Shown in pieces: positions 19,256 to 46,521 of a stretch of 64,000 bases of DNA. The stretch is from the IMG/VR virus record IMGVR_UViG_3300010885_076238, positions 62,001 to 126,000 of that record, one strand, 5' to 3'. Each line of letters starts with the position of its first letter. Positions within the stretch are counted from its first letter, which is position 1. The translations under genes were made by a program, and so were the position numbers. The notes beneath the pieces are model-generated. The model was not told where the DNA came from. It did not search any database and worked only from the letters and a program-made list of their open reading frames with translations.

Positions 19256-19394
19256 TGGCAGTGGCGGCTCACTGATAAATGAATTAAAAGGAAAAATTAC
19301 AAATTGGGTAAGCACAGAAGTGCCCAATGCAATCAATAATTCAATTGAAAATTCAGAAATAACAAAAAGTATGAAAATTTCTGCCGAGTTTGAA

Positions 19395-19419
19395 AATAAT
19401 AAAAAATAAAGCTCGTTAT
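19395..19419 (+). promoter_or_regulatory. phage promoter motif, leaderless class
   Basis: AATAAT-N13-CGTTAT, 6 nt, then ATG 19426; no SD. Confidence 0.75.
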
Positions 19420-19425
19420 AGCCTT

Positions 19426-20466
19426 ATGAAGCTATTTATTGAAACTCTTGAAGCACGAACCGTTTTGTCTGTAGTGTTTTTTGATAAAGAAACCAAAGCA
19501 GCGGTGGCAAATGCTTATAAAGACAAAATTATTTCAAGAGATGAGCTTGTTTCTATTTTTAGGCAGACCACCGATCAGAACACAATCACCGCCAATGAAC
19601 TATCAGATTTGAGAAAAGTTACGACGTTGAGAATGCCAGAGCATGTTCGATACTTGGCTAAAGATGTCGTTTTTGCGAATATTGCAAATGCAAAGTTTCA
19701 AGGCAATACTTTGGGCAACTTGACGGCAAATTCTCCCGCTCAAAAGATTAATAATCTTATAGATAAATGGTTTTATGGAAAAGACCGTCCAGCCTTGCCT
19801 AACAATCTATCATATAAAGAAAGCAAATTGCCTTTATTCGACAATGGAGCGACAAGCACGGATGTTATTCAAGGTCAACTTGGAGATTGTTATTTATTGG
19901 CATCATTAGCCTCTGTTGCAGATAAATTAGGCATAAGAACTTCGTTTATCGACAATGGCGACAGAACATGGACGATTAGGCTTTATGATTTGAATGGCAT
20001 ACGCAAGGTGGATTATATCACCGTTGACAGTTACCTTCCGGTTGATGCGAATGGGTCATCCATTTATGCAAATTTTGATAAAGAATTATGGGTTGCACTA
20101 ATCGAAAAAGCATATGCACAATATAATGAAACGGGTGGCACATGGCATTTAGAAAAGTCAAATAGTTATCAAGCAATAGTGGGTGGCTATCCTGTTCTTG
20201 CACTAGAAAGCATAACGGGAGTGCCTACTAAATGTAATTTTTTCTCTGATGCTATGGCTCAAACAACATTGAACAAATCACTTTATCGCGGCGATGCTGT
20301 TGTTTTATCTGCCCCAGTTAAAGATAAAGATGTTTCTCATTCTTATTATGTAAAATCCTATTTAAATGGCTTGTATTATTTGTATAATCCTTGGGGCTTT
20401 AGTCATTTAGAAGTTACTTGGGATCAATTGAAAACAAACATAAACTTTGTTATAGAGGCAAAATGA
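19426..20466 (+). CDS. calpain-like (peptidase C2) cysteine protease with planctomycete-type LExRxVLS N-terminal motif
   Basis: QGQLGDCYLLA (Cys), LWVALIEKAYA, SHSY (His), YNPWG (Asn); N-terminus MKLFIETLEARTVLS. Confidence 0.88.
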   Translation: MKLFIETLEARTVLSVVFFDKETKAAVANAYKDKIISRDELVSIFRQTTDQNTITANELSDLRKVTTLRMPEHVRYLAKDVVFANIANAKFQGNTLGNLTANSPAQKINNLIDKWFYGKDRPALPNNLSYKESKLPLFDNGATSTDVIQGQLGDCYLLASLASVADKLGIRTSFIDNGDRTWTIRLYDLNGIRKVDYITVDSYLPVDANGSSIYANFDKELWVALIEKAYAQYNETGGTWHLEKSNSYQAIVGGYPVLALESITGVPTKCNFFSDAMAQTTLNKSLYRGDAVVLSAPVKDKDVSHSYYVKSYLNGLYYLYNPWGFSHLEVTWDQLKTNINFVIEAK

Positions 20467-20822
20467 CTCCTTTTTTAGCTTATCAAAAAATCGTTCTTGC
20501 AATGAACAACCTTCATGACAAAAGCGATAAATTCGCCAAAAGAATAAATAAAAAATCGAAAAAGTATAAATATTTTCGCATTCCAGAGTACGAAAAGTTT
20601 TTAATAAATGACGTTAAATTTTCTTATTATTATGCTAGGGATGTGGTGCATGGAAAATTGCCAGAGGACATGCACAATTTAATGCTTTGTGAAGCATTAG
20701 CTAATTCAAATAACGCTTATGTTAAAAACTATTTTGAAATTTGTAAAGGAAATTTTCCAATCACGAATCAAAATCTTGGCTTGAACTCATTGAAAATGGA
20801 AAGACAACTTTATGGAACATAA
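20463..20822 (+). CDS. short LP-HN-M family protein
   Basis: YYARDVVHGKLPEDMHNLML. Confidence 0.75.
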   Translation: MTPFLAYQKIVLAMNNLHDKSDKFAKRINKKSKKYKYFRIPEYEKFLINDVKFSYYYARDVVHGKLPEDMHNLMLCEALANSNNAYVKNYFEICKGNFPITNQNLGLNSLKMERQLYGT

Positions 20823-21630
20823 AATAATTACGCATGATGGCAAGGCTCATCAAGACGATTTTCTAGGAACTTGCGTTTGTATTTTTAAATTGAACGCACC
20901 TGCATTTAGAAAAAAATTTACATCTGAAGAGTTGTCTGATCCTAGTTGTTGGATTTTAGACCAAGGAAGAAGTTTTGAATCAGAGCTTCATAATTTTGAC
21001 CATCATCAATTAGAAGAAGAGATTTGTGCTTTTACAATGGTTTTAGACCATTTTTATGGCAAAGAATATAGAAAATTTTTACCACAACTTAAATACGTTG
21101 AAATATTTGATAGTTACGGCCCCTCTGCTGCCGCCAAGTTCGCAGAAATGCCAGTAGATAGTATTGAAATTATTTCTTCTCCTGTTCACACTTCAATGAT
21201 GAGAGTTTTTTCTAAAATAGATGGAGAAATATTAAATCCAATTTATTCGGTAATGAAAGAAATTGGAAGGGATATTTGCGAACAAATAGAAAATGTTGAT
21301 TTGTTTTTCAAAATTCTTGGAGACTCAAGATTTTTTGATTATAACGGAATTAAAATTTTTGATGTGACACAGTGCGAGATGCCACAAGGATTTAAGCACG
21401 ATCAACTTCCAACTAAAATGTTTTGTAAAACAAGAGGGCTAGAGCCTCAACTAATTCTTACAAAAGATTCAAGGCAAAATGGATTTAGACTTGTTAGCAT
21501 TAATACAAATTCTATCAAGTTCTTACAGAATGAGTTGTCTTATTTTACTCACAACAGTGGTTTTTTGACTAACTTTTTTAAATACGAAGACTATAGAAAA
21601 ATAATAGATAATTATGTCGAAAAATTCTGA
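20812..21630 (+). CDS. MYG1-like (DHH-type) nuclease/hydrolase
   Basis: IITHDGKAHQDD, ILDQG, NFDHHQ. Confidence 0.75.
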   Translation: MEHKIITHDGKAHQDDFLGTCVCIFKLNAPAFRKKFTSEELSDPSCWILDQGRSFESELHNFDHHQLEEEICAFTMVLDHFYGKEYRKFLPQLKYVEIFDSYGPSAAAKFAEMPVDSIEIISSPVHTSMMRVFSKIDGEILNPIYSVMKEIGRDICEQIENVDLFFKILGDSRFFDYNGIKIFDVTQCEMPQGFKHDQLPTKMFCKTRGLEPQLILTKDSRQNGFRLVSINTNSIKFLQNELSYFTHNSGFLTNFFKYEDYRKIIDNYVEKF

Positions 21631-22042
21631 GGAAAACAGAGAAAAAATTAACTTCGCTATAGGTTCTATTGAAAAGCTTCTTGAGGAAGCTATAGACAAA
21701 TGTTTTTATAGAGATCTTAATTCTTTTTGCTCTCTGAGTAGGCTAACCGTATCAGATACTTTTTTGAGCCAAGAGCCAACAAAAATTAAAACTTACCTAT
21801 TTGATTTTGTCGATAAAATAAAAAATAAATATGAAAAAGTAGTTCGCACAAATGGAGAAAGAGATATTTTCGCTGATTTTTGCGAAATTATAAATACATT
21901 ATTTCCTTTTGTTTTTCCAATAAATTTGGAAGAATTTCAATTTAGGAAATTAATGGAAAAGACTTTTTTAGATAAAAAAATTAATAAAATGCCGTACTTA
22001 AATAAAGACGAATTTAAAAATAAAGATATCAAAAAATATTAG
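21614..22042 (+). CDS. hypothetical protein
   Basis: Overlapping operon ORF. Confidence 0.65.
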   Translation: MSKNSEENREKINFAIGSIEKLLEEAIDKCFYRDLNSFCSLSRLTVSDTFLSQEPTKIKTYLFDFVDKIKNKYEKVVRTNGERDIFADFCEIINTLFPFVFPINLEEFQFRKLMEKTFLDKKINKMPYLNKDEFKNKDIKKY

Positions 22043-22052
22043 GAGAACTAAC

Positions 22053-22412
22053 TTGTACAAGGTAAGATTTCATTTGGGACGAGGTCAAAATTACAAAAAG
22101 TGGCAAGTCTCCTCCTTAGATGGAGCGGCAGTATACTTCGATCCAGAAACAACAAAACTAAAACTGATTAATTGCAAGCTTAAGAATAATAAAAATATTT
22201 CTAGAAAAATATTTGAAGGCCAAAATAAAATGGTTTGTGCTTGGGTTGAGTGCGAAGAAATTCAAATAAACCCAAATTCAAATACTATTAAAAACAAAAT
22301 ATCTTACAATCCTAAAAAAGCTCCTTATTGGTGCGACGAAAGCGGGGCAGATATTGACAATCAAAAATTTGATATGATTTTTAGTGAAGGCAACGCTTTG
22401 TATATGGGCTAA
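22053..22412 (+). CDS. hypothetical phage protein
   Basis: YKVRFHLGRG...VCAWVECE; AGGAG before TTG. Confidence 0.75.
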   Translation: MYKVRFHLGRGQNYKKWQVSSLDGAAVYFDPETTKLKLINCKLKNNKNISRKIFEGQNKMVCAWVECEEIQINPNSNTIKNKISYNPKKAPYWCDESGADIDNQKFDMIFSEGNALYMG

Positions 22413-22437
22413 AATAATAATTTCTCTTAGACGTTAT
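22413..22437 (+). promoter_or_regulatory. phage promoter motif AATAAT-N13-CGTTAT
   Basis: Exact consensus, AGGAG 6 nt downstream. Confidence 0.75.
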
Positions 22438-22457
22438 GATTCTAGGAGAAAAATGAA

Positions 22458-22913
22458 GTGAATACAGAAAAGCTACTCATTAGAGGGGAAGAACATGAGA
22501 TTGAAGTCAAGCCTATAAATCTGATCTTCAATTCCTCAGTTGATGAGTCCGTTTATTTAGATCGGATTATGATAACTCCTGATATGACCTTGGAGCATTT
22601 CAAATCTCTCAAGGAAGTAGACCCATACTCAGCGAGATTTTTTAAGATAGTCGTTCCAGATTTTCCATATGAAATTACTAAAGAAAAATTAGAAGGATGT
22701 TCTTTAGCCTTTCAGCATATCATTGGACTTTTTTCTTTGAGTTTTGTTTTATTGTCTCAAAACATAAAGTTTGGATGGAAATATCCAGAGTCATTTCTTC
22801 ATCCAAAATATCAAGGAAATATTGCTGACGCACTAATAGCTTTCTCAGATAAAGAAAAGTTTATTAGAATTATTACAGAAGTCAAAGAAGAACTCTTAAA
22901 AAAGGGCAAATAA
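22458..22913 (+). CDS. hypothetical protein resembling an ABC/OLD ATPase C-terminal fragment
   Basis: YPESFLHPKYQ resembles the EPExxLHPxxQ D-loop; no Walker A. Confidence 0.45.
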   Translation: MNTEKLLIRGEEHEIEVKPINLIFNSSVDESVYLDRIMITPDMTLEHFKSLKEVDPYSARFFKIVVPDFPYEITKEKLEGCSLAFQHIIGLFSLSFVLLSQNIKFGWKYPESFLHPKYQGNIADALIAFSDKEKFIRIITEVKEELLKKGK

Positions 22914-22916
22914 TTT

Positions 22917-23276
22917 ATGAAAGAAAAGCCTTTAATTTTTATCGATAAGATAGAAAAAATAGAGTTTTTTGATGTTTTAGTTGAAGATATTCATTCTGCT
23001 GGAGAAAAATCAAATCATCATTGTTTAGAGGGTAGTTCTAAATTAACCTACCATGAAGTTTGGGAGTGGATAAGTCGAGGTGGAGATTGGAGCTTCATCG
23101 TGACAGAGCATAACAACCCAGAGAAAGTTTTCATGCGTGGCTCTGCATATGAAGATATGGACGCTGCAAGAAAAGGGGAACACCAACTATCGTTGGGACA
23201 GGTAACAGATGCGGAACTTTCTGATCTGCAAAAATTATTACATAGAAAAAGAAAAGAACAATACGGAATCAAATAA
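22917..23276 (+). CDS. hypothetical protein
   Basis: Operon ORF. Confidence 0.65.
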   Translation: MKEKPLIFIDKIEKIEFFDVLVEDIHSAGEKSNHHCLEGSSKLTYHEVWEWISRGGDWSFIVTEHNNPEKVFMRGSAYEDMDAARKGEHQLSLGQVTDAELSDLQKLLHRKRKEQYGIK

Positions 23277-23316
23277 TAAAAAATCAACATCGTTATGTAA
23301 TTGAGGGAAATTTAAA

Positions 23317-24438
23317 ATGTCTAAACCAAAAGAAATAGTAAAAAGTGCGATGGATGGTAAGCTTCTTACAAAAGAAGAAAAGTCCATAGTTGCATCTAAT
23401 GCTCAATGCTCAAAAATCTATGCAGAAAAGGTTTTGCAAGAAAGATTTATTGAGGGCGAAGAAGTAATTAAAACTAGTGCTTCTCAAACCTACCTTTATG
23501 CAAAAGACGTTATAAAAGGAAGGTGGAAAGAAGGGGAAGACACTCTATCTAAAGATGCCCATTACGCAGTAAAATATGCTGCAAATGTTTTATTTGGAAG
23601 ATTTCCAAAAGGCGAAAATGAAATTGCAAAAAATCCTAAGGCGGCATATCAATACGCAGTGGCAAGGAGTGCGAGATTTGAAAAAGCAGAACAAAAAATG
23701 ATAGAAGAACTTCCGGCCATGGATTTGGTTGAATATAGCTTAAGTATTATCGGAGATAGATGGCCGGAAGCAGAAGAAAAGATATTAAAATCTTCGCGTC
23801 GTTCTGAGTCTTCCGTCGCCTTCGCTGAGACAATCGTCTATAGTCCATCTACTTCTTCCTATAGCTCTCCGGCGTGTCATTATGCTTGTGGGCATGAATT
23901 CAAATGGAAAGAAGCTGAGTCCGAAATCTTAAAGAATCCTGTGGAGTCTTCTCAATATGCAATTAACGCCTTAAAAGGAAGGTGGGAAGAAGGAGAAGAA
24001 ATTATTTCTACTTGTGGGTCTTCCTCTCTTACTTATGCTTTGTATTTAGAACAAGAGTTTGAAAAAGGAGAGGACGCAATAATCAATTTGATTGCAGAAG
24101 AAAACTCTTGGAGTTCTAATCACCTTATAAATAATTATGTTGGTCGAGTTTTACATGGGAAAAGATGGCTGAAGTTTGAAAGCTTTATCGATAAAGCAAA
24201 TATTGATGATGAAAAATTAACTACGCTAATACAATACTATAGCGATAATGTTAACGCAAAGCTGCCCGACTTCATTCACAATAGAATGATTGCCGCCGCT
24301 ATAAGCAACCCAGAAGATTGGGGCATTCGCAAATATTTCGATTCATTGGAAGAAAGAGAAGATAACGAAAAATTGCTTTTGGTCAAAAGATTTAGTTTAG
24401 ATCAACTTAGGGAAATATTGAGTTCAGTAAATGATTGA
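23317..24438 (+). CDS. 26-aa helical-repeat protein, LP-HN-M family
   Basis: Multiple YAxxVIKGRWxEGE units; AKLPDFIHNRMIAAA; promoter at 23272-23296. Confidence 0.85.
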   Translation: MSKPKEIVKSAMDGKLLTKEEKSIVASNAQCSKIYAEKVLQERFIEGEEVIKTSASQTYLYAKDVIKGRWKEGEDTLSKDAHYAVKYAANVLFGRFPKGENEIAKNPKAAYQYAVARSARFEKAEQKMIEELPAMDLVEYSLSIIGDRWPEAEEKILKSSRRSESSVAFAETIVYSPSTSSYSSPACHYACGHEFKWKEAESEILKNPVESSQYAINALKGRWEEGEEIISTCGSSSLTYALYLEQEFEKGEDAIINLIAEENSWSSNHLINNYVGRVLHGKRWLKFESFIDKANIDDEKLTTLIQYYSDNVNAKLPDFIHNRMIAAAISNPEDWGIRKYFDSLEEREDNEKLLLVKRFSLDQLREILSSVND

Positions 24439-24907
24439 AAACATTACAAAAGAGTGGAAAACCGAGACTGGCTTGGTTGCAAGGGTCATTCAACACCCTC
24501 TTTTATATCATTTTTGTGGTTATGTAGGACTTGATAAGGGTTCTGGTTTTTATGAACTGGACTATGCCAAAATAGAAAACCGCATATATGTTCATGGAGG
24601 CGTAACATTCACAGGAACCTTTAAAGACTCTGCTTTATGGTGGATTGGTTATGACTGTGCGCACTCTTGCGACTTTAGTAAGTATAATCCAAGTGGCGTA
24701 AAAAGAGACTTGAATTTTTGTGTGGATGAGTGCGAATATTTAGCGAAACAAATTTTTCAAACTCCTATTGACTACTATTTTTTAGCTAAGAGAATAGGAA
24801 GACTACCGGAAGACCTTCACAATAAAATGATTGCTTGGGCAATTGAGAATCCTAATGATGAAATAATTAAGGAGTATTTTGAAAATTATGGAATGCCACT
24901 TCTTTGA
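24431..24907 (+). CDS. phage protein (CGYV/VHGG/WWIGYDCAH domain) with appended LP-HN-M motif
   Basis: N-domain unrelated to the repeats; C-terminal GRLPEDLHNKMIAWA. Confidence 0.75.
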   Translation: MIENITKEWKTETGLVARVIQHPLLYHFCGYVGLDKGSGFYELDYAKIENRIYVHGGVTFTGTFKDSALWWIGYDCAHSCDFSKYNPSGVKRDLNFCVDECEYLAKQIFQTPIDYYFLAKRIGRLPEDLHNKMIAWAIENPNDEIIKEYFENYGMPLL

Positions 24908-25139
24908 ATGCCATTGTCACAGCCCAGAACACACTTTGGTTTTTCATCTTTTTGATGATGATCCAAAAATGCTTTACGCCCATGTGTTTTTGAATCCAGA
25001 TACTTTTTTTAAGAGAATTTGGAATTCAATTAAATATATTTTTGGATATAAATGTGTGTATGGTCATTTCGATGAATTTATTTTCAATCCAAAAGATGCT
25101 CAAAAATTAATAAATTTATTAGAACAAATAAAGGAATGA
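24888..25139 (+). CDS. hypothetical protein
   Basis: CHCHSPEH metal-binding-like N-terminus. Confidence 0.65.
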   Translation: MECHFFECHCHSPEHTLVFHLFDDDPKMLYAHVFLNPDTFFKRIWNSIKYIFGYKCVYGHFDEFIFNPKDAQKLINLLEQIKE

Positions 25140-25145
25140 CTTAAA

Positions 25146-25493
25146 ATGATCACCGAATTTAGACTGCCCTATCACGGAACCTATGTCCGTGAGATCAAAT
25201 ACTCTGTTCAGGTCATGTGCTTGCCAGAAAACAGCAACGACCTTATCGTCGCTCTCCTACGCCGCTGCTACCCTGAGATCACCGAAGAAGCGATCAACGA
25301 ACTCGCCTACAAGAACAAGGCGTTCACAATCTTCGGAACGATCAAGATTTTCAACGGCGGGCCAATGTACGCAGTTCTCTACCGTCACGATGAGAAGTGG
25401 TTCATCTACTACGTTCCACAATCCATTCGCAACTCAAAAAGCTTCACGGATCACGACATTCCGAAGAATATTCCTTGCTTCATGGGTTTCTGA
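25146..25493 (+). CDS. hypothetical protein, GC-rich relative to flanks
   Basis: C/G-ending codons dominate, unlike neighbours. Confidence 0.7.
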   Translation: MITEFRLPYHGTYVREIKYSVQVMCLPENSNDLIVALLRRCYPEITEEAINELAYKNKAFTIFGTIKIFNGGPMYAVLYRHDEKWFIYYVPQSIRNSKSFTDHDIPKNIPCFMGF

Positions 25494-30049: not shown

Positions 30050-32536
30050 TTATTTTTTACTAACTTGATAGCACCAAAATTTAATTGTTTTATCATTATT
30101 ATAGCCAACCTTCACACAACTCTTAATTTGTTTAATTTTTGATAAAATCTTTGCGAATTGTGGTTGGTATTTAAAAGAACCTTCTAAATTCATAACAAAT
30201 TCTAATATAACAAAAACTAAAGACTTAATTTCTGAAAATTCTTTTGTCTGTCTCCAGTGTGGGTTTAGATCAAATCTATTACTTAGCTTCACATCTACTG
30301 ATTCTAAATTAATCATAGTTTGAATAAAGCTATCAATTACATCATTTATTTCTCTAGATTTGTATGTAGCATCCATATTATTATCATAAGAAATAACTCT
30401 AAATTTTCTTTGCATTTCTCCAAGAATTCTTACAAATCTTTTGCCGATATTGGCAACACCTGTTTGGGACTTTGAAATTCCTTCTTTTGTAGAACCGATT
30501 TTGCTAAAATCTATTTTAGAATAATCGCCATCAAAAAGTCCAGAACTTATCAATTGATCACTTAATAAGATTGCTTTATTAATTTGAATCTTTAGTTCTT
30601 CTGTAATAATGCCTGGGCCGGTCATGCTTAGTATATAATTAAGATTGGTTCCGATGTAACGAACTTTATCTTTATTGAATATTCCCTTTGTAATAAGAGC
30701 TTGATATTCATCTTCGCTTATTTTTTTGGCTTCTCTCACAAGAGAAGAACATAAAACAAAAAAGTTATTGAGCACTCTTTCAATTTTACCCATTCCATAA
30801 TATTTCACATTGCCTAATTCAGTCTGAACTTTGCTAAGATTACGCTCCAATCCCATAAACCATTTTTCTTTAGGAGTGGCATCTAGTCCAAAACGGATTT
30901 CGTCTTTTTTTTGTTTATCATAATAGTCATTGTCACACTCGCCAATTTGATTAATAATAATTGTAGAAATTAATTCGATATTTTTTGTGCTAAAAAATAC
31001 TCCCTGAGTTGGCTCTGAGGGATATATTGATCCTGTATCGTGCGAGTCTAAAAGACCATCAATCCCTAGTTTTCTTAGTAGTCCCGTCCACATTGCCCAA
31101 GGGCGATATTTTTTTTGATTACGTTCGGGCTTTTCTTTTTCCCCTCTGTTTGAACCTATGTAGCCTTTTTTTGCTATTATCATATCTGATATTTTTTTTG
31201 TGATCACATAAAGAAATTTACCGGAAACGTCCTGCTTCCCAGATGATCTCAGACTGATTAGAGACTTCATTAAAGCTTGATTCCAATCTATATCATTTTT
31301 TTCACAAAAATCTTGTAGTTCTTTGCCAAATGGAACTTTTATGGATTCTGATATTTCTTTTTTTCTTTTTGCTATTTCAACTTCAAAATTACCAATTTTT
31401 TTTACCCAATAATCTAATAATTTTTTTACTTTTTTATTTGATAATAAGAAATAACTTTCAATGTAAGTATTGAAATTAGGGCTTGCATCAATATCTCTAA
31501 AATAAGATCCTAAATTAACATAAGATCTCAGACTTTTTGAAATTTTAGTTAATTCTTCTAAAGAAATTTTATCATTTCCAAGCATTTCGAGCATTTTGCG
31601 ATCATTTTCTCTTGAAATGCCCCCAGTACCGCTAGAAAAAGGCTCGGTTTTTATCATTTTATTTGCAAAATTTCTAACCTCGTCAGACAATGCAAAAGAA
31701 TTATTGTCTAAATTAGTGAATAAAGGTAGTTTTTGCGAAGAACCGGGCCATGGCGATAAACTAGAAATCAAATTATCAAGACCAAAATTAATCATCATTC
31801 TTGTTGCGTTGAAAGTCAATTCAGAAATTATTCTTTCAAAATTTTCTTTCGATGAAAGTTTTTCAATTCTATCAACAGAATATTTTTTAATTGATTTTTC
31901 TTCTTCTGAGTAGTCGTCCATCTCGCTCTTAGCAGTTGATACTGTGTTATGATAGAAATTATAAACAATATCATCGCTATACAATTCTGCTCCGCTTTTT
32001 AATAATTCCTCTTTTATTGTTTTTTTTAATAATTTAATTTTTAAATTTTCATGCTTGTAAATATAGTTGCTTATTTGTTGTTTTATGGTTTTGTTTATTT
32101 CATCAACATCGGAAATTTCTTTTATTTCTCCTTCTCCTGGCTTCATAGAAATATAACTTTCTTTATTTTTAATTTTAAAAATGTGAAGATACTTTCTGCT
32201 TCCGGCCATAGGAACGCCTGAGACATTCTTTTTAATAATATACTCAAGAGGAAAAGCATATAATCCTAAAGGAGTTCCACCATCGTCAGCAGAATATTTT
32301 GGCCCAAGTCTTTGAACACAAGAAAAATTACCCCATATGTCTTCGGGCTTAGTGTTATTGTTCACAGCTTTTTCAAAGACAGTCTTTATTTGTTTGATTT
32401 TTTCAAACTTTCTGTAAGGTTTTCCTGTTTGAGGATCGGCTATAGATGGATCAACTCTGCCCACGGCTCTTGAAAGGAGTTGTGGTTCTTCTATCAAATA
32501 TGTGTCTATTGGTTGAAAATATTCTTTAAAATTCAT
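30050..32536 (-). CDS. large putative internal head protein with split ART-like domain (paralogue of 34149-36446)
   Basis: MNFKEY...LIEE N-peptide; TPLGLYAFP and LGIDG..D...IYPSEPTQGVFF blocks shared with the paralogue. Confidence 0.6.
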   Translation of the reverse strand: MNFKEYFQPIDTYLIEEPQLLSRAVGRVDPSIADPQTGKPYRKFEKIKQIKTVFEKAVNNNTKPEDIWGNFSCVQRLGPKYSADDGGTPLGLYAFPLEYIIKKNVSGVPMAGSRKYLHIFKIKNKESYISMKPGEGEIKEISDVDEINKTIKQQISNYIYKHENLKIKLLKKTIKEELLKSGAELYSDDIVYNFYHNTVSTAKSEMDDYSEEEKSIKKYSVDRIEKLSSKENFERIISELTFNATRMMINFGLDNLISSLSPWPGSSQKLPLFTNLDNNSFALSDEVRNFANKMIKTEPFSSGTGGISRENDRKMLEMLGNDKISLEELTKISKSLRSYVNLGSYFRDIDASPNFNTYIESYFLLSNKKVKKLLDYWVKKIGNFEVEIAKRKKEISESIKVPFGKELQDFCEKNDIDWNQALMKSLISLRSSGKQDVSGKFLYVITKKISDMIIAKKGYIGSNRGEKEKPERNQKKYRPWAMWTGLLRKLGIDGLLDSHDTGSIYPSEPTQGVFFSTKNIELISTIIINQIGECDNDYYDKQKKDEIRFGLDATPKEKWFMGLERNLSKVQTELGNVKYYGMGKIERVLNNFFVLCSSLVREAKKISEDEYQALITKGIFNKDKVRYIGTNLNYILSMTGPGIITEELKIQINKAILLSDQLISSGLFDGDYSKIDFSKIGSTKEGISKSQTGVANIGKRFVRILGEMQRKFRVISYDNNMDATYKSREINDVIDSFIQTMINLESVDVKLSNRFDLNPHWRQTKEFSEIKSLVFVILEFVMNLEGSFKYQPQFAKILSKIKQIKSCVKVGYNNDKTIKFWCYQVSKK

Positions 32537-32607
32537 GTATCTATATCTATGTTTTTACTGAAATAAATTAGTCGATCTATTTCGTATATAAATTTATAGG
32601 AGATTCT

Positions 32608-32994
32608 ATGTATAAAATTGTATTGCGATCTATATTTTACCATTGGTTTGCCTTATTTATTGGAATTTCCATAGGTTTTATAGCTAATTCGGAGTGGGTT
32701 GGGGACAAATATGCGATTGTAGAAAGATCGGTCAGAAACATATTTTTCCCAATTCAATATGACGAGAATATTGAGGCTTTTGTAAAACAGGCTGGAAAAG
32801 TGAGGTTGTGGTCTAGTTTAGAATGCCCCGAGGATTTTGTTGTATTAGACGATTTGGTAAAGGGCGAAGAATTTTATTGGGCATTGTATAAATATAAGGA
32901 TAAGAACGGAAAAGAAGTCAAGGATGTTGGAAGCATTAGAGTCAAATGGAAAACTTGGGAATATTATTATAAGCTAGATGAAATAATTAAATAA
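32608..32994 (+). CDS. membrane-anchored hypothetical protein
   Basis: AGGAG RBS; N-terminal TM helix. Confidence 0.7.
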   Translation: MYKIVLRSIFYHWFALFIGISIGFIANSEWVGDKYAIVERSVRNIFFPIQYDENIEAFVKQAGKVRLWSSLECPEDFVVLDDLVKGEEFYWALYKYKDKNGKEVKDVGSIRVKWKTWEYYYKLDEIIK

Positions 32995-33003
32995 AGGTAA
33001 AAT

Positions 33004-33273
33004 ATGAAAACTTTCAATGAATGGCTAAAAAACAGAGTATTGAGCGAAGGCAATCAAAAAAACGCAAGAGAACTCAGAGCGTTATTAGAAAAAGAGGGCT
33101 TTATTTTTGTGCGAGACGGTGACGAGCTTATAATGAAAAAAGACGACATTCCAATCACAGTAAGCAAACAATCGGATCGCGTTTTGCCAAGAAAACTTGT
33201 AAAAACCGTCCTGCGAGATTGGCAAAGAAACAAGGATAAAATAGACGCACTAAGAGCCAGACGAGCCGTATAA
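33004..33273 (+). CDS. putative internal head protein with HicA-like fold
   Basis: MKTFNEWL...LSE then ARELRALLEKEGF..R......ITV.....LPRKLVKTVLRD; TAAATA at 32988-32993. Confidence 0.55.
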   Translation: MKTFNEWLKNRVLSEGNQKNARELRALLEKEGFIFVRDGDELIMKKDDIPITVSKQSDRVLPRKLVKTVLRDWQRNKDKIDALRARRAV

Positions 33274-33294
33274 TATTATTTACAAATTCCTTAA

Positions 33295-33319
33295 AATAAT
33301 AATTTATTATATGCGTTAT
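33295..33319 (+). promoter_or_regulatory. phage promoter motif AATAAT-N13-CGTTAT
   Basis: Exact consensus, AGGAGG 5 nt downstream. Confidence 0.75.
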
Positions 33320-33338
33320 ACCATAGGAGGAAACTTTT

Positions 33339-33701
33339 ATGTGGCTTTTTACTAAATATGGGTTTTTCAGTGTTGTTTGTGCAAGAAAGAACAATGGTTT
33401 GAGTTCTGACGTAGATACAGAAACTCTTATGATCAGAGCTAGATCAAAAAATCATCTTGAAAATTTGATCAATAGTTTTCAAGATTTGAATGATTGTCAA
33501 ATAGCAACAACACACGACACAGATTACCGATACAGAATCTTTGTTCCAAAGAAGATATGGAGCAATGTGATGCTAGAATTATCAAGTGAAATTGATTATG
33601 GAAACTTCAAGAGCAAAGTTCACAAATCTTTGCAAGACCAAGAATTTTCTCATTGCTTGGGTGATATTTGGAGTGTAATGTATAGGTATCAAGATGAGTA
33701 A
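33339..33701 (+). CDS. hypothetical phage protein
   Basis: MWLFTKYGFFSVV...IRAR...DYRYR...IDYGNFK. Confidence 0.75.
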   Translation: MWLFTKYGFFSVVCARKNNGLSSDVDTETLMIRARSKNHLENLINSFQDLNDCQIATTHDTDYRYRIFVPKKIWSNVMLELSSEIDYGNFKSKVHKSLQDQEFSHCLGDIWSVMYRYQDE

Positions 33702-34152
33702 GGTTCTATTTTTGCACGGGATGTTTGGTCAAAATAGTTCCAAGCCTTATTTTATAAGATCTTTAGGATTAGAGGTTTTTCATCCATTTTTGAATGATTG
33801 GAGCTTTGAAGATTCTATCAAAGAAGCCCAAAAACATCTAAATGAAACAGAGCCAGACCTAATCGTAGGTTCTTCAAGAGGCGGTGCGGTTGCGATGAAC
33901 ATTGATTCAAAAAATATACCAATTATTTTATTGGCTCCTGCTTGGAGGTTTTTTGGCAAGAAAGATCGAACCAAAGATAATGCAACTATAATTCATAGCG
34001 AAAATGACAACTTGATTCCGATTAGTGATAGCATAAAATTATCAGCAAATTCAAATTGCAAATTGGTAATTGCAGGAAAAGACCATAGACTAAATTGCGA
34101 AGATGGCAAAAATGCAATCAAAAAAATAATTAATACATATTTGAACTGCTAA
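33694..34152 (+). CDS. small alpha/beta hydrolase
   Basis: FLHG, GSSRGG nucleophile elbow, IHSEND, DHRL. Confidence 0.85.
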   Translation: MSKVLFLHGMFGQNSSKPYFIRSLGLEVFHPFLNDWSFEDSIKEAQKHLNETEPDLIVGSSRGGAVAMNIDSKNIPIILLAPAWRFFGKKDRTKDNATIIHSENDNLIPISDSIKLSANSNCKLVIAGKDHRLNCEDGKNAIKKIINTYLNC

Positions 34153-36446
34153 AGTATATCGGGGTCAAACATTTTAGAGCCATCTGGGTTAAGCGGCTCA
34201 GAGTCCTCGCTTGGCTTTCTAGGTGGTTTTGGCTTCTTATGCTGCGGATGCGTAGTCATTCTAAGTTGAGATGGCTTCAAAAACTCTGCGTTTTGGGGAA
34301 TATCGGGAGTGTATGGAAACATTCCAATCTTTATCAAATATCCAATAACATAAGAATGGTGTTCTATAATCTTTCTTAATTGCTCAAGACTCAACCCAGA
34401 AGAATTGGTTTGCAATTCATCAGCTTGAACGGTTCCAGATATTGGCTCGACTAGGTTCCCTTTATTATCATAAGAATAGCCATCCCCATAACGATCACAA
34501 AACATTATCAAATATCTATCAGAATCGACTTTTTCTAAAACTTTCCCGTAGTCATAATTTTGAAATGGCTTTATGAGCCTTACGACCGCTCCAATTTTTG
34601 GAATTAATAATTTTTCTATATTTGTCTTATTGGCAAGTAAAGTTGAAGACACTCTCTTAATTTCTTGTTCTATTGCATTTTTTAAATCTTGATCACTATC
34701 GGGATTATCTCTTTGTTTCATGAATGAATCAAATAAAATTTGAAATTTTGTTAAAAGTTTCATTGAGCTTAATGGCGATTCTCCTTCATATCTAATACTA
34801 TCTCGATAATTTCCAACAAGCTCTGAAAATCCTTTTTTGATTCCTTTAAGAAATCTATTTGCAGGCGTATCTTCAATATCCCAATCTAAAGGTTCTCCTG
34901 ATTTTCTTTTTTGATTTCTTGTTTGTTTTGGATGCTGCCAACTTTGTGAAAGATCTCTTGGGTTAAATTTATTATTTTGTAAGACTTTCAAAAGTTTAAA
35001 TTGCCTTGGATTAAAAAATGCTCCCTGAGTCGGCTCTCCACTGTGAATAGTGGATGTTCCTTCTGTATCTATTACTCCATCGATTCCCAATTCCCTTAAT
35101 ATTTTTGTCCACAATGCCCATTGTCTAATTGAACTATCGTCTTTATCAGTAACTTCTTGAGACATTATTTTTGTTATTTGATAAACGAAAGCCCCAGAAA
35201 TTGTGCTTAGTCCCCGTCGAGACATTTCTTCAACAGTTGTTGCTAAAACTTCCAGCCAATCAATTTTGTACTTATCACAGAGTTGTTTGATCTTATGATC
35301 AAGGGGGAAGTGAATATCTTTTAAATATTTGCCTTTTTGTGAATTAAATTCATCAAGACTTTTTTCTAGTGACTTTTTGATTTTTTTAGAAATCATTAAA
35401 GCCTTATCAAAAATTTCTGGATTTTTGAGAAATTCTGTTTGGGTTGCCATTTTACTGCGATCTTCGATGTAAGGCGTTCCTATTCTAATATTACCATCCG
35501 CCCCAGAAAAATTCGCTAGACTCATTATTTTATCGATATTAAAATTAAAAAATGATTCTTCTTCGTTTTCTTCATTCCAATTCAAACCATATAATTTTAT
35601 TAAGCTTTGCTTGTCTTCATCACCTGCACTTTTTATTATTTGTATTGCTCCACTAGACAAATAAATTCTAAGCTTTTCTTCATCTAACTTGCCAATGTTC
35701 ACAAATTGAGTTGGGCCATTGCTGGATCCATATCTTTTAATTATCATGTTATCCACAAATTTTTTAATTTCTTTTAATATTTCTGATTTTTCTGGAATGT
35801 CTAAAAGTTTTAATTTTTCTTTTATGCCAAAATAGCCACCTTGCAAACTATCATAATAAACATTTGAATGTAAATCGCCCAATGAATCTTCTATTAGCTC
35901 AAGAATTACTGGGGCATTTCTAAGATTAGATCGCACGAACTTTTTAAGAAAATCAATTTTTTTTGAAAAAACTTTTTTGAAATTTTTGCTAAGAAAATCT
36001 TTCTCTTCTCTTATATTTTTACGAATAGACTCTAAATTAGAAACTTCCATTTGCCCTCTTTTCATAGAAACTACATTATCACTAACCATCTCAAATATAA
36101 GAATGTATTTTCTACTGTATCCATAAGGGACTCTTAATCCGTTTTCTAAAACGTAATTTATAGGATAAGCATAAAGGCCCAAAGGGGTTTGTCCGTTTTT
36201 TGCGTTATAATAAATACCCAATCTTTGATAATCACTAAAACTAGCCCAAATTTTATCTTTAGGAACCTTTAGTTTGCTTACTATATTTTCTAGTTCTTTC
36301 TTTTTATTATTAGCTCTCCAAGGCTTGCCGGTTTCTGGCTCTACGAGCGAACTGTCTACGTCACCAATTCTTTTTTTAACTATGGCTTCAACGATTGTTT
36401 CAAAATAACTTGCGTCATATGTTGTGTAATATTCTTTGAAATTCAT
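34149..36446 (-). CDS. large putative internal head protein with split ART-like domain (paralogue of 30050-32536)
   Basis: MNFKEY...IVEA; TPLGLYAYP; LGIDGVIDT...IHSGEPTQGAFF. Confidence 0.6.
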   Translation of the reverse strand: MNFKEYYTTYDASYFETIVEAIVKKRIGDVDSSLVEPETGKPWRANNKKKELENIVSKLKVPKDKIWASFSDYQRLGIYYNAKNGQTPLGLYAYPINYVLENGLRVPYGYSRKYILIFEMVSDNVVSMKRGQMEVSNLESIRKNIREEKDFLSKNFKKVFSKKIDFLKKFVRSNLRNAPVILELIEDSLGDLHSNVYYDSLQGGYFGIKEKLKLLDIPEKSEILKEIKKFVDNMIIKRYGSSNGPTQFVNIGKLDEEKLRIYLSSGAIQIIKSAGDEDKQSLIKLYGLNWNEENEEESFFNFNIDKIMSLANFSGADGNIRIGTPYIEDRSKMATQTEFLKNPEIFDKALMISKKIKKSLEKSLDEFNSQKGKYLKDIHFPLDHKIKQLCDKYKIDWLEVLATTVEEMSRRGLSTISGAFVYQITKIMSQEVTDKDDSSIRQWALWTKILRELGIDGVIDTEGTSTIHSGEPTQGAFFNPRQFKLLKVLQNNKFNPRDLSQSWQHPKQTRNQKRKSGEPLDWDIEDTPANRFLKGIKKGFSELVGNYRDSIRYEGESPLSSMKLLTKFQILFDSFMKQRDNPDSDQDLKNAIEQEIKRVSSTLLANKTNIEKLLIPKIGAVVRLIKPFQNYDYGKVLEKVDSDRYLIMFCDRYGDGYSYDNKGNLVEPISGTVQADELQTNSSGLSLEQLRKIIEHHSYVIGYLIKIGMFPYTPDIPQNAEFLKPSQLRMTTHPQHKKPKPPRKPSEDSEPLNPDGSKMFDPDIL

Positions 36447-36452
36447 AAATTT

Positions 36453-37067
36453 TTAGGAGGTAGTAGGAATATTTTTTGGAATGGTTATGCCCAAACTAAT
36501 CAGGTGTTTATCTATTGCTAATTTAACAATTGGCAAAGGAATTCCGTGGCCGATATTACTATAGGTTGTTAGTCTAAATCCATAATTATATGCCAACTCA
36601 ATACTATCTTCTACTGGAACCGTAATGTCTTTTTTTCCATGAATAACTATGGTATCACTTGGTAATTTGTCTGGTTTTGAATTGAATATTTTCCAAGCAG
36701 GGCATCCTAAAACAAATTTAGCGTTTGGGTATCTGTAGCCTAATTTCATTGCAACAGCCCCGCCTTGACTTGTTCCAACAACCACATCTGGCACAAAATT
36801 TTTAATTTCTTCATCATGCTTTTTAACATTATCCTGCATATGCTGACTTCCCCAAGTATCTACCTTTTTTCTAATCATAAAAAATGGCTGATACCTCTTA
36901 ATTCTACCCAAATAAGCAGCAAAATAGTGATTTGTAGTGCCTATGGATTTAACATCATAGCCCAGAGTAGCTAGTTTTTTGGGTTTAGAGCCGCTACTAT
37001 TCATTCCGGTAAACCATAAGACCCTTGGTGGTCTTTCTTTTTCTTGAAGCCAGGTTTTAAATTCCAT
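36453..37067 (-). CDS. alpha/beta hydrolase with capsid-targeting-like N-terminus
   Basis: Preferred start MEFKTWLQE at 37067; GTSQGG, IHGKKD, GHG triad. Confidence 0.8.
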   Translation of the reverse strand: MEFKTWLQEKERPPRVLWFTGMNSSGSKPKKLATLGYDVKSIGTTNHYFAAYLGRIKRYQPFFMIRKKVDTWGSQHMQDNVKKHDEEIKNFVPDVVVGTSQGGAVAMKLGYRYPNAKFVLGCPAWKIFNSKPDKLPSDTIVIHGKKDITVPVEDSIELAYNYGFRLTTYSNIGHGIPLPIVKLAIDKHLISLGITIPKNIPTTS

Positions 37068-37138
37068 ATTTAATATATATATTGTAGTAGATAAAAAGTG
37101 CAAAAAACAATGATTTAATAAATAACTAGGCACTCATA

Positions 37139-37162: not shown

Positions 37163-38764
37163 ATGATTAATTTTTATGAATTCTTAAATATTATAAACGT
37201 CAAAAACGAAGCTTTTGAAAAAGATTTATTCGACCCTCATCCAGATAACTCCGATCCAGAAGGCGGCTCATCTCACGATGTTTACAGACTAAAAAATAAA
37301 AAGGGAGAAGACTTTTGGAGCAAATCTGCTGCGTCTAACCTACAGACGGTTAATGAGTATTTGGCTTGGAAAATTTATAAATTATTTGACATTAGCGTTG
37401 CCTCAAACGCTCATTTAGTTGTTAATAATAATAAAATGAGATTGGTTTCTAGCCAAGTTTCTGGAAAGCAAATTCCTTTGGACTATAGTTCAAGTTTCTC
37501 AAGTGCTTTATCTGGTTCTGATATTCATAAAGGATTTTTTGTTGATGCCTTTTTAGGACATTGGGATGTTGTTGGAAACGCTCCTAGATCGAATTTATTT
37601 ATAGATGATCAAAAACGGGTTGTAAGAATTGATTTGGGCGGTTTAGATTTTAGAGCTACTGGCCCAAGAAAAAGCAAAACAATTCCTGGCTCTTGGGGTG
37701 GAGAAGTTGGAGAATTAAAAACAATGGGCGGATTAGGTGGCCCAATAATGAAAAGTAATGCTTCTGCCGTGTTGGGAAATCTACAAAAAGATCAACTTTT
37801 AGAATCTGCTAAGATTTTTTCAAGAGTAGGTTGGTCACAAATAGAAAACGTACTGAAGCAAGTAGAAGCAGAGGTAGTAGATATTTCCAAAGAACATAAC
37901 TTGCCTGAAGTCGCAGAAGAAACTTCTAAATACATAAAAGAAATAGAAGAAGTTCTATACAGTCGTTTTCAAGACATGCACAAAAAAATAAAAGAACTAG
38001 GATTGGATCAATTTTCAGAATGGCAAAAACTAGCAGGAGTGCAAATCTTTTCAGAAGAAATAGCGACTTACAATCAAATCGAAGATAAGGAGATGCTCTA
38101 CAAGACATATTACGACACATATGCAGATGCAAATGCAAAAGATGGCAAAGGTCTAAAGCCTTGGAGCAAAAGCGATTTTGAATGGCGAGCAGAAAAATGG
38201 ACATATGCAGGAATACTTCCAAAAGAAGGAGTTCCTTTTGAGCAATTAGGATTCATTACAGCAAGAGAAAAAGGCGGGGTCTTTAAATTAACTGGTATGC
38301 AAGGCCCAAACACAAAAGCAAAAATAAAAGGATTGATGGAGCTTGCTGCTTTAGCAAGACCAATTTGGGGAGCGATGGATAAAGACTTTACAGAAAGACT
38401 TAAGAAATTAGGATTTTTAACTCCTCCGAAAAAAATCATGACTTTCCTTCTTCCTGTTATACAAAGTGATCCTCAATTTTCTTCAGGTGGCGAATGGGGA
38501 AATCTGAACGATGATGGTGGAATAAATTTTGAATTAAGCGGCATAGGAAGCACTATCAAATATTTTACAGCTAACAAACAATTTTATAAATTGATCATAG
38601 ACAAAATGGTTTCTAAAGGTAAGATTGATGCAAAAATGATTAAATTATTAGAAAAATGGCCGACCATGCCAGAAGCAATGAAGCAAATGTCTTTATCGTT
38701 TTTGCCAAAAAACTTAGACTTGGACGTTGAATCTTTAGATTGGCTATCGTTTGTTTTAGCTTAA
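37163..38764 (+). CDS. putative internal head protein: HipA/PI3-4K-like kinase domain + possible GNAT-like domain
   Basis: MINFYEFL N-peptide; WSKS, NEYLAWKIY, GHWDVVGN...N, RIDLG; C-domain GFITARE...LKKLGF. Confidence 0.6.
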   Translation: MINFYEFLNIINVKNEAFEKDLFDPHPDNSDPEGGSSHDVYRLKNKKGEDFWSKSAASNLQTVNEYLAWKIYKLFDISVASNAHLVVNNNKMRLVSSQVSGKQIPLDYSSSFSSALSGSDIHKGFFVDAFLGHWDVVGNAPRSNLFIDDQKRVVRIDLGGLDFRATGPRKSKTIPGSWGGEVGELKTMGGLGGPIMKSNASAVLGNLQKDQLLESAKIFSRVGWSQIENVLKQVEAEVVDISKEHNLPEVAEETSKYIKEIEEVLYSRFQDMHKKIKELGLDQFSEWQKLAGVQIFSEEIATYNQIEDKEMLYKTYYDTYADANAKDGKGLKPWSKSDFEWRAEKWTYAGILPKEGVPFEQLGFITAREKGGVFKLTGMQGPNTKAKIKGLMELAALARPIWGAMDKDFTERLKKLGFLTPPKKIMTFLLPVIQSDPQFSSGGEWGNLNDDGGINFELSGIGSTIKYFTANKQFYKLIIDKMVSKGKIDAKMIKLLEKWPTMPEAMKQMSLSFLPKNLDLDVESLDWLSFVLA

Positions 38765-45432: not shown

Positions 45433-46521
45433 ATGCCTAATACAATTACGCCAATCGAAGCAGCAAGCCTTTACTTCAAAGAAGGCTCAAGTGATAAAGT
45501 TTACAATGCTACCTTGGAAAAAGAGGATGACAACAAATATGTTGTTAATTTCTCTTACGGCAGACGAGGAAGTGCATTGAAGTCTGGATCCAAAACCTCA
45601 AGCCCCGTTTCTCTTAAGGAAGCCAAGACCATCTTTGACAAAATTGTCAGAGAGAAAACTTCTAAGGGCTATAAATACGTCACCGACGCTGTTGCTAAAG
45701 AAATTCATGTTGCCGACAACCCACCGGACACGCCTACTGAGTCCAAGTGCGTTTTGCTCAATCCAATCAGCGAAGAAGAACTTGAAAAGTATTTGAACGA
45801 TCCAGATTGGATTGCCCAACAGAAAATTGATGGAGTTAGATTTATGCTCCATAAGGTAAAAGATAAAATTACTGCGTATAACCGTCGCGGACTTTACGCA
45901 AACATTCCAACCGATCTTTATAATTTCGCAAAAAACACTCAAGAAGATTTTCTAGTTGATGGAGAATTGATTGGAGATGTTTTTCACACCTTCGATATTC
46001 TTGAATATAACGGCAAAGACCTTACTCAAAACTCAGTTGTCGAAAGGCTTGAGGTTTTGTTGAATTGGGTTAATAATAATCCGTGCGAACTTGTAAAGTA
46101 TACAGAAACTCAAAGTTCAAGCAAAATTGAATTTTATGATCGTCTTGTTCGTGAAAACCAAGAAGGAATTGTTTTCAAACATAAAGACGCAAAGTATTAT
46201 GCTGGTAGGCCCGCCAGCGGTGGAAAGTATGTAAAATATAAGTTTTACAGCACTTGTAGTTGTGTCGTGACTGATGTGAATAATAAAAGAAGCGTAAGTA
46301 TAGGCTTGCTCAATGGCAAAAAATTAGTTGATGCTGGGAATGTTACTATTCCTATCAATTTTGAAATTCCTAATAAGGATGACATTGTGGAAGTCAGATA
46401 CCTTTATGCAAGAAAGCAGTCTGGCTCTCTTTATCAGCCTGTGTATCTTGGCAAAAGAACCGATATTGTTAGAGAAGATTGCAAGCAAAGTCAACTGAAG
46501 TATAAATTTGATGATGAATAA
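45433..46521 (+). CDS. WGR-domain + ATP-dependent DNA ligase
   Basis: WGR: SSDKVY...YGRRG...EKTSKGY; ligase: QKIDG, DGEL, FDIL, EGIVFK, KYKF; OB fold VEVRY, LYQPVY. Confidence 0.85.
   Translation: MPNTITPIEAASLYFKEGSSDKVYNATLEKEDDNKYVVNFSYGRRGSALKSGSKTSSPVSLKEAKTIFDKIVREKTSKGYKYVTDAVAKEIHVADNPPDTPTESKCVLLNPISEEELEKYLNDPDWIAQQKIDGVRFMLHKVKDKITAYNRRGLYANIPTDLYNFAKNTQEDFLVDGELIGDVFHTFDILEYNGKDLTQNSVVERLEVLLNWVNNNPCELVKYTETQSSSKIEFYDRLVRENQEGIVFKHKDAKYYAGRPASGGKYVKYKFYSTCSCVVTDVNNKRSVSIGLLNGKKLVDAGNVTIPINFEIPNKDDIVEVRYLYARKQSGSLYQPVYLGKRTDIVREDCKQSQLKYKFDDE

Follow-up and report, generated by a model that had tools for sequence, protein, structure and literature searches.

Two paralogous phage proteins with a predicted split ADP-ribosyltransferase-like core

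The paralogous genes and the phage that carries them

ADP-ribosyltransferases (ARTs) are among the first weapons of phages on hosts and of hosts on phages. Our analysis of 64,000 nucleotides of viral DNA, here referred to as the window (bases 62,001-126,000 of the 204,311-bp IMG/VR record IMGVR_UViG_3300010885_076238), dealt with two large genes whose products, P0001 and P0002, very probably share an ART-like core according to structure prediction. The record is linear, has a G+C content of ~33% and a CheckV completeness of 88%, and originates from freshwater metagenomes, where the phage locus recurs across several independent studies. Its gene content is that of a large (jumbo), uncultured tailed phage whose cultured relatives are all distant, with PHROG matches to tail fibre, baseplate, DNA ligase, helicases, clamp loader and tRNA nucleotidyltransferase; the DNA ligase is ~31% identical to Bacillus phage ligases. 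The two genes and their parts are as follows, with the stop codon included in the coordinates of the whole genes.

30050..32536, minus strand: P0001, ART-like paralogue 1, 828 amino acids (aa); open reading frame (ORF) and translation, family hidden Markov model (HMM) E value 2e-57
32120..32359, minus strand: P0001 aa 60-139, first half of the ART-like domain (strands 1-3); block-1 HMM E value 4e-40; mapped residues N70-F-S72, R76, T88-P89, G91, Y93, F95-P96
31106..32119, minus strand: P0001 aa 140-477, insert between the two three-strand halves; 419 aa from the invariant P to the invariant E
30947..31105, minus strand: P0001 aa 478-530, second half of the ART-like domain (helix and strands 4-6); block-2 HMM E value 3e-58; mapped residues W483, G491, D497, Y505, E508, Q511, F514
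30053..30946, minus strand: P0001 aa 531-828, C-terminal region in which Pfam, PHROG and NCBIfam recognise no domain; alignable with P0002 over aa ~531-610 only
34149..36446, minus strand: P0002, ART-like paralogue 2, 765 aa; ORF and translation, family HMM E value 6.5e-65
36036..36269, minus strand: P0002 aa 60-137, first half of the ART-like domain; model strands 66-71, 91-95, 114-120 and 125-127, predicted local distance difference test score (pLDDT) 91-98; mapped residues S69-F-S71, R75, T87-P88, G90, Y92, Y94-P95
35124..36035, minus strand: P0002 aa 138-441, insert of long helices and a small beta subdomain (aa ~235-323) in the AlphaFold2 (AF2) model; 383 aa from the invariant P to the invariant E
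34968..35123, minus strand: P0002 aa 442-493, second half of the ART-like domain; model helix 442-452, strands 457-460, 474-477 and 483-490; mapped residues W446, G454, D460, H468, E471, Q474, F477
34152..34967, minus strand: P0002 aa 494-765, modelled by AF2 as a bundle of helices (528-614), a small part resembling a beta barrel (635-674) and a disordered tail that is basic and rich in proline; no family match

Both frames are uninterrupted under translation table 11 and run opposite to the prevailing plus strand. An alternative genetic code was considered and found unnecessary, since both frames are open under that table. No recognisable Shine-Dalgarno sequence lies in the stretches that precede the ATG of P0001 (32537-32607) and that of P0002 (36447-36452). 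The region is not an assembly artefact, because it is letter-identical in contigs from two freshwater metagenome runs of two studies, and a third study contains a variant. This variant differs by ~3%, with isolated indels of 3 bases each and, within the P0001 insert, a group of small indels that sums to -6 bases. A further database protein, P0003 (JGI, 553 aa), in which the N terminus of a short-chain dehydrogenase is joined to the C-terminal half of P0001 at 100% identity, is probably a chimera of assembly or gene calling.

An earlier note, made from the letters of this DNA alone, had described the two ORFs as paralogues that share two sequence blocks, and our comparison bore this out. By BLASTP, the first block matched over aa 1-199 with 35% identity (E value of 1e-27) and the second over aa 364-610 of P0001 and 350-586 of P0002 with 26% identity (E value of 6e-25); it begins ~325-360 aa past the end of the first. 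The motifs that the earlier note had quoted, namely IW..FS..QRLG...G.TPLGLYA.P, SRKY..IF and WA.WT..LR.LGIDG..D..T..I...EPTQG.FF, were all found. In a six-frame translation of the whole 204-kb record, HMMs of the blocks matched P0001 and P0002 only (E values of 1e-39 to 1e-57). The same note held that the inserts and tails are divergent. This is true only of the opening ~165-210 aa of the insert and of the final ~180-220 aa of the proteins, where P0001 and P0002 have no similarity; the last ~115 aa of the insert and ~100 aa after the core can still be aligned.

A split domain and its family

Relatives were collected by a profile search that was exhaustive over 1.84 billion metagenomic cluster representatives. 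It returned 2,034 representatives at an E value of <=1e-3, 860 at <=1e-10 and 51 at <=1e-30. A word-indexed search found only four relatives, and a scan of IMG/VR with N-terminal patterns found none. No Pfam (E<=1), NCBIfam or PHROG model matched P0001 or P0002, and the compact relatives tested had no Pfam or NCBIfam match either (Pfam: 10 compact relatives, E<=0.01). Likewise, tblastn searches of the 50,697 phage records of INPHARED with P0002, P0126 and P0089 gave no family match, and the same search with P0071 yielded only ankyrin-repeat matches and one short block-2 match in a 735-kb uncultured phage.

Architecture was counted in 155 family sequences. Both blocks, always in the same order, were present in 145 of them, with three sequences carrying two copies of the block pair, and the distance from the invariant Pro of block 1 to the invariant Glu of block 2 varied continuously between 113 and 481 residues (median 190). 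Furthermore, compact members of 205-270 aa consist of the two blocks, ~60 helical linking residues and little else. Because of the constant order, the continuous spacing and these compact members, we take the two blocks to be the halves of a single domain, which can be enlarged at an insertion point between them. The earlier note had also spoken of variable inserts; the long insert is not a freely varying element, however, as single-stretch profile matches extend over ~650 positions and reveal that it is conserved among relatives of 600-900 aa. Going by these alignments, P0001 and P0002 belong to a long-insert subfamily in which the insert itself is conserved. Other members are fusions. P0058 (2,058 aa) combines two copies of the domain with a PBECR5 nuclease, an SLT transglycosylase and a NUDIX domain, and in the P0071 group ankyrin repeats are fused to the family domain; by domain content, both fusions are of the effector type.

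A 3+3 split sheet is the defining feature of the ART core (PMC9503650), and it was present in the predicted structures of both a compact and a long member. The AF2 model of P0126 (205 aa), built from a 138-sequence alignment, reached a pLDDT of 92.9 and a predicted template modelling score (pTM) of 0.86 and placed strands at 42-47, 66-70 and 89-95, followed by helices and by strands at 169-173, 184-188 and 194-201. The AF2 model of P0002 (145 sequences; pLDDT 81.4, pTM 0.64, both core halves >90) has the same strand order, with the insert lying between the halves. Searching the PDB by Foldseek with the compact model returned 9k3a chain B first (E value of 1.5e-4), followed by MbcT, cholix toxin, AcrIF11 and many poly(ADP-ribose) polymerases (PARPs), and nearly all rows were ART-superfamily folds. 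VIA-align against 48,161 chains gave a concordant result: 9k3a chain B ranked first (Z 8.3), ahead of ParT (6.3), NatT (6.2) and MbcT (6.1), the further rows comprised RES toxins, diphtheria-toxin homologues, AcrIF11 and PARPs, and all of the top 22 were ART-superfamily folds. The AFDB clusters, BFVD and the ESM Atlas added ART-PolyVal, RES, DUF3990 and AcrIF11-like clusters. With the P0002 models (ESM and AF2), residues ~62-531 aligned to ART-PolyVal and to unnamed viral clusters at template modelling (TM) scores by target of 0.45-0.63. Searches of the PDB with the full-length P0002 model (Foldseek and VIA) brought up chiefly generic helical bundles, which matched the insert and tail, and were uninformative on the split core. 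Collectively, the modelled structures make it very likely that the core of P0001 and P0002 has an ART-like fold, as the earlier note had proposed for a core split between the two blocks, although the scores are moderate. In the models the two blocks come together as an ART-superfamily fold, an outcome on which that note had made its proposal depend.

The nearest named neighbour by structure in the AFDB clusters, BFVD and the ESM Atlas is ART-PolyVal (PF18760; Tox-ART-HYD2-like), in agreement with the likeness to polyvalent-protein ARTs seen in the earlier note. ART-PolyVal and our family are both phage-borne and have in common a G-x-Y in strand 2 and, around strand 4, a region that resembles L-G-x-D-G-x-x-D, and P0058, itself a polyvalent protein, provides a further link. 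However, PF18760 had no match in the whole genome at E<=10. The published triads are H-Y-D for ART-PolyVal and R-S-E for Alt/VIP2 (PMC5512222), and neither is reproduced in the family. Where ART-PolyVal has its His, most members have S, T or N, and the equivalence of D497/D460 to its Asp is uncertain. In addition, the family possesses an extra loop with an invariant H..E-x-x-Q, and its domain is split by an insert of 50 to >400 aa.

The RES and ParT toxins (MbcT, NatT, Xre-RES and ParT) share the compact ART-superfamily fold (VIA Z 5.7-6.3), and MbcT is the top match among Swiss-Prot models. They differ in belonging to toxin-antitoxin modules, in their R-E-S constellation and in lacking a large insert; the likeness is structural only, and RES (PF08808) gave no Pfam match with the window proteins or the compact relatives. 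Since RES-type toxins (MbcT, NatT, Xre-RES and VPA0770) are among the closest solved folds after 9k3a, and the remodelled site is without the canonical transferase triad, the proteins might degrade nicotinamide adenine dinucleotide (NAD+) or another nucleotide, as an NADase, an NAD+ phosphorylase or a hydrolase of signal nucleotides, possibly clearing defence signals derived from ADP-ribose. We consider such an activity quite unlikely: the transferase ParT, AcrIF11 and ART-PolyVal score equally well, RES models do not match, and the large target-docking extensions and ankyrin fusions better suit macromolecular targets.

AcrIF11 (PDB 6kyf), an anti-CRISPR ART, is an instance of a small phage ART directed against host defence (Foldseek probability 0.93, VIA Z 4.9), and its clusters in the ESM Atlas aligned to the family at TM-scores of 0.40-0.57. 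It differs in its size of ~130 aa, in having neither insert nor extensions and in showing no sequence relation. By their defining sequence features, the members of the family are not ART-PolyVal, Alt/VIP2 or RES proteins. The family can best be seen as a large new branch of the ART superfamily that is specific to phages, in which the conserved site is remodelled and the hinge carries an insert of variable length.

Conserved residues and the question of delivery

Residue conservation was determined in 138 diverse members, whose identity to the reference is 20-45%, and gave the conserved positions listed below.

K/R, 100%: P0126 residue 51, P0001 R76, P0002 R75
T, 99%: P0126 residue 62, P0001 T88, P0002 T87
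P, 100%: P0126 residue 63, P0001 P89, P0002 P88
G, 96%: P0126 residue 65, P0001 G91, P0002 G90
Y/F, 98%: P0126 residue 67, P0001 Y93, P0002 Y92
Y, 92%: P0126 residue 69, P0001 F95, P0002 Y94
D, 99%: P0126 residue 172, P0001 D497, P0002 D460
H, 91%: P0126 residue 179, P0001 Y505, P0002 H468
E, 100%: P0126 residue 182, P0001 E508, P0002 E471
Q, 100%: P0126 residue 185, P0001 Q511, P0002 Q474

At the position matched by eye to the strand-1 His, 50 of the 138 sequences have S, 43 have T, 26 H, 9 Q, 7 N and 3 R; the window proteins carry N70 (P0001) and S69 (P0002) there and retain the strand-2 Tyr (Y93/Y92). The putative active site was mapped by matching patterns by eye to gp27 of cyanophage A4 (LYHGT, GTYFS, LRLVGVDALTDGDTTLVINP). 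From this mapping we infer that the G-x-Y of strand 2 is kept, that an extra loop of ~8 residues before strand 5 carries H..E, and that the family Q occupies the position at which many ARTs have the catalytic Glu, with the fixed D aligned to the D of gp27 LTD. The earlier note had doubted activity on the grounds that the catalytic Glu position reads EPTQ. In part this doubt stands, as the site is still not a canonical triad; the invariance of E and Q in all 138 members nevertheless speaks against a decayed site. Indeed, because the polar cluster is absolutely conserved at the elements that form the cleft, the alignment favours a site that still works, with an altered chemistry, over a dead one.

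The best solved match, gp27 of cyanophage A4 (A-4L; PDB 9k3a chain B, VIA Z 8.3 over 147 residues), is an ejection protein that resides inside the capsid. By eye, its ART-like domain also has a helical insert between the halves. It has LYHGT and GTYFS and lacks the E-x-x-Q loop, and it is part of a 1,717-aa podophage core protein described only in structural terms. Comparison of gp27 with the family by hhalign or by the family HMM detected no sequence homology, and an attempt to build a gp27 profile yielded one homologue. In the genome of Anabaena phage A-4L (L008), gp27 lies at 20116-25269 (minus strand), and an ART-PolyVal-like domain can be recognised by eye at ~aa 1380-1600 (LYHGT, GSGTYFS, LRLVGVDALTDG); this domain is absent from the account of the structure paper and undetected by Pfam.

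The match to gp27 raises an alternative in which the proteins are non-enzymatic: the ART-like fold would lend structure or binding capacity to an internal protein of the head or to an ejection protein, and the conserved residues would serve folding, DNA binding or partner binding. In support of this, gp27 is a component of the A4 pre-ejectosome that is given as a structural, DNA-contacting layer without an enzymatic role, the canonical His-Gly is lost in the window proteins, and long relatives occur in head modules. Nonetheless, polar or charged residues (T, D, H, E, Q and K/R) are fixed at 91-100% among members only 20-30% identical, which is typical of catalysis or ligand binding and would not be expected of a scaffold. 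Moreover, compact members of 205-270 aa, comprising little beyond the domain, are encoded in early-type blocks, and gp27 has no sequence relation to the family. On balance, a purely non-enzymatic function appears unlikely.

The gene context of the relatives bears on delivery. The genes of three long relatives (1,288-1,459 aa) immediately precede that of a T4-type portal, and two of them closely follow terminase, in modules that also contain an S77 prohead protease and, where the contig extends far enough, a gp23-type capsid gene; P0058 has a 1,366-aa protein as its neighbour on a contig that is podophage-like. Published surveys have read such head-module contexts as signs of packaging for phage ARTs (PMC9503650). 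In contrast, the gene of the compact P0126 is located in an early-type block, where it adjoins an RNA ligase and is close to Tad3 and a pyrimidine-dimer excision gene. Long forms in head modules and ~200-aa forms in early blocks recall the division of T4 into a large packaged Alt and the small ModA and ModB, and this parallel is a functional one. The three T4 proteins belong to a different ART clade: the family has no Pfam match to them and lacks the R-S-E triad, and none of the three appears in the top 30 matches to Swiss-Prot models. For the window proteins, packaging into the capsid is suggested by the gene context of distant relatives only.

The T4 capsid targeting sequence is MKTYQEFIAE (PMC8442874), and an N-terminal motif resembling it, M-x-F-K-E-[FYW]-[LIF]...E, occurs in 67 of 149 family members. 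We rejected this N terminus as evidence for capsid targeting, since the motif is also present in 17 of 267 other ORFs of the genome, including a HicA-like one. Regions upstream of ORFs showed no enrichment of the T4-type late promoter TATAAATA, and P0001 is preceded by no more than a copy with one mismatch.

Could the two proteins be true analogues of T4 Alt, that is, late, capsid-packaged, N-terminally processed ARTs injected with the DNA to modify host RNA polymerase or other host proteins? The relatives between terminase and portal and near the S77 protease fit such a role, as do the SLT-bearing polyvalent relative, the MKTYQEFIAE-like N termini and the lengths of 765 and 828 aa, which are close to that of Alt. 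Against it stand the unspecific nature of the N-terminal motif, which even a HicA-like toxin shares, the failure to find head genes or the S77 protease in the record, the position of both genes outside a structural module and the lack of an enriched late promoter. Moreover, sequence and structural neighbours both place the family outside the Alt/VIP2 (R-S-E) clade of T4 Alt, with which the earlier note had drawn its comparison. We therefore regard a true Alt analogue as a real possibility, if a doubtful one.

Genomic surroundings and possible function

P0001 and P0002 are surrounded by accessory and DNA-metabolism genes, including a HicA-like ORF, hydrolase-like ORFs and a metallophosphoesterase. 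Two neighbours are adjacent to P0002.

36453..37133, minus strand: 226-aa ORF with a weak alpha/beta-hydrolase signal, ending 6 nucleotides (nt) upstream of P0002
33694..34152, plus strand: 152-aa ORF, a paralogue of the 226-aa ORF (29% identity), convergent with the 3' end of P0002 with a 4-nt overlap

The 226-aa ORF is probably co-transcribed with P0002. In three related contigs, ORFs of this weakly hydrolase-like pair remain beside ART-like genes at 58-71% identity, and a functional tie of the pair to the ART-like proteins is possible. Contigs L016 and L011 are syntenic with the window, their neighbouring genes being 53-77% identical: the 152-aa ORF has 62% and 58% identity in L016 and L011, respectively, and stands beside ART-like genes there, a 120-aa ORF has 65% and 53%, and the 226-aa ORF reaches 71% in a related contig. 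The ART-like genes, in contrast, are only 28-50% identical to those of L016 and L011, and within the conserved blocks alone. Paired copies are also found in other phages, as P0008 and P0009 in L016 and, in tandem, as P0027 and P0028 in another lineage. Such fast divergence and repeated duplication are the pattern expected of genes that engage host targets or defences; the proteins are probably fast-evolving enzymes directed at the host.

Several other features of the window and record were observed. Between the paralogues, an 89-aa ORF (33004-33273, plus strand) belongs to the HicA toxin family (Pfam E value of 1e-6; PHROG 'toxin'), and the 120-aa ORF that follows it (33339-33701), conserved in the related contigs, could be its partner. 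A 533-aa ORF (37163-38764, plus strand) has no family match and is 77% identical in L016 and 60% identical in L011, where it is present as two shorter genes. The window also encodes two ATP-dependent DNA-ligase-like genes (3317-4591 and 45433-46521, both plus strand), the second of which has an N-terminal WGR domain and matches nucleotidyltransferase families of capping enzymes and RNA ligases. A 358-aa ORF (19390-20466, plus strand) contains a calpain-family cysteine protease domain (Pfam E value of 1e-17), which is unusual in a phage, and the adjacent ORFs at 11173-12729 and 12726-13796 (both plus strand) have weak INT_rpt ('integrase repeat unit') matches near the gathering score. Finally, over the whole record the 9-mer TTCGTTATC, detected as a pair of overlapping 8-mers, shows a 4-5 fold enrichment in the 100 nt that precede ORFs (9-11 sites) and may be a phage promoter or regulatory motif; it is absent upstream of both ART-like genes.

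Taken as a whole, the data are best explained, with a confidence somewhat above even, by multidomain phage proteins that have a split ART-superfamily core and are likely NAD-linked, host-directed enzymes. Each gene would encode a large multidomain protein whose core is closest in shape to ART-PolyVal, RES toxins and AcrIF11, with a helical/beta insert of 300-340 residues placed exactly between the two three-stranded half-sheets and a variable C-terminal region after the core. The remodelled site would comprise S, T or H at the strand-1 His position, the strand-2 Tyr and the fixed D...H..E-x-x-Q around strands 4 and 5. Its cleft may bind NAD+ or a related nucleotide, and the enzyme may then modify a host or host-defence molecule or cleave a nucleotide from it, while the insert and tail would dock the target. 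Action might take place at the start of infection, by proteins carried in the capsid or made from their own transcription units.

Several observations weigh against this explanation. Structural similarity scored moderately: with the exception of A4 gp27, matches have VIA Z values of 4-6.3, which by the tool's own warning can reflect a common arrangement, and the TM-scores are mostly below 0.6. Searches with PDB profiles, Pfam, PHROGs, NCBIfam and, on the genome, PF18760 gave no sequence link to any ART model. As for the site, D, E and Q are all candidates for the catalytic position in the mapping by eye; the canonical strand-1 His-Gly is absent from the window proteins (N70-F and S69-F), and P0001 has a Tyr (Y505) where 91% of the family have His, a substitution shared by 6% of members. 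The closest solved relative in shape, gp27, is described only as a structural, DNA-binding ejection protein and, by eye, has no acidic residue at strand 5. With respect to delivery, the record of the window gave no match to gp23, the S77 protease, the T4 portal or terminase, and 20 large ORFs compared with PHROGs included no head protein; the ART-like genes lie among accessory and DNA-metabolism genes, and compact relatives lie in early-type blocks. Given the predicted models and the conserved residues, we consider an active NAD-linked enzyme plausible, at about even chances.

A more specific version, which we put forward only tentatively and judge rather improbable in its entirety, is that of a new phage ART-fold clade with the signature [S/T/H]-Y...D...H..E-x-x-Q, in which the catalytic acid would have shifted to the loop before strand 5. 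Its chemistry or target would be new for phage ARTs, it would be deployed in two forms, giant and packaged in T4-like phages or small and early, and the two rapidly diversifying copies in the window would each act on a different target in the host or its defences.

The family comprises at least ~2,000 sequence clusters, is almost absent from cultured phages and is unmatched by the Pfam, NCBIfam and PHROG models tested. It combines an ART fold and a rebuilt, strictly conserved site with tolerance of inserts of hundreds of residues at the hinge between the halves. If its members are active, they would widen the known catalytic repertoire of the ART fold and constitute a new class of phage effectors that could be tested against host transcription, translation or defence; if they are inactive, they would exemplify the reuse of an enzyme fold as an internal building block of the virion. 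With either outcome, the annotation of many large 'hypothetical' phage proteins becomes testable.

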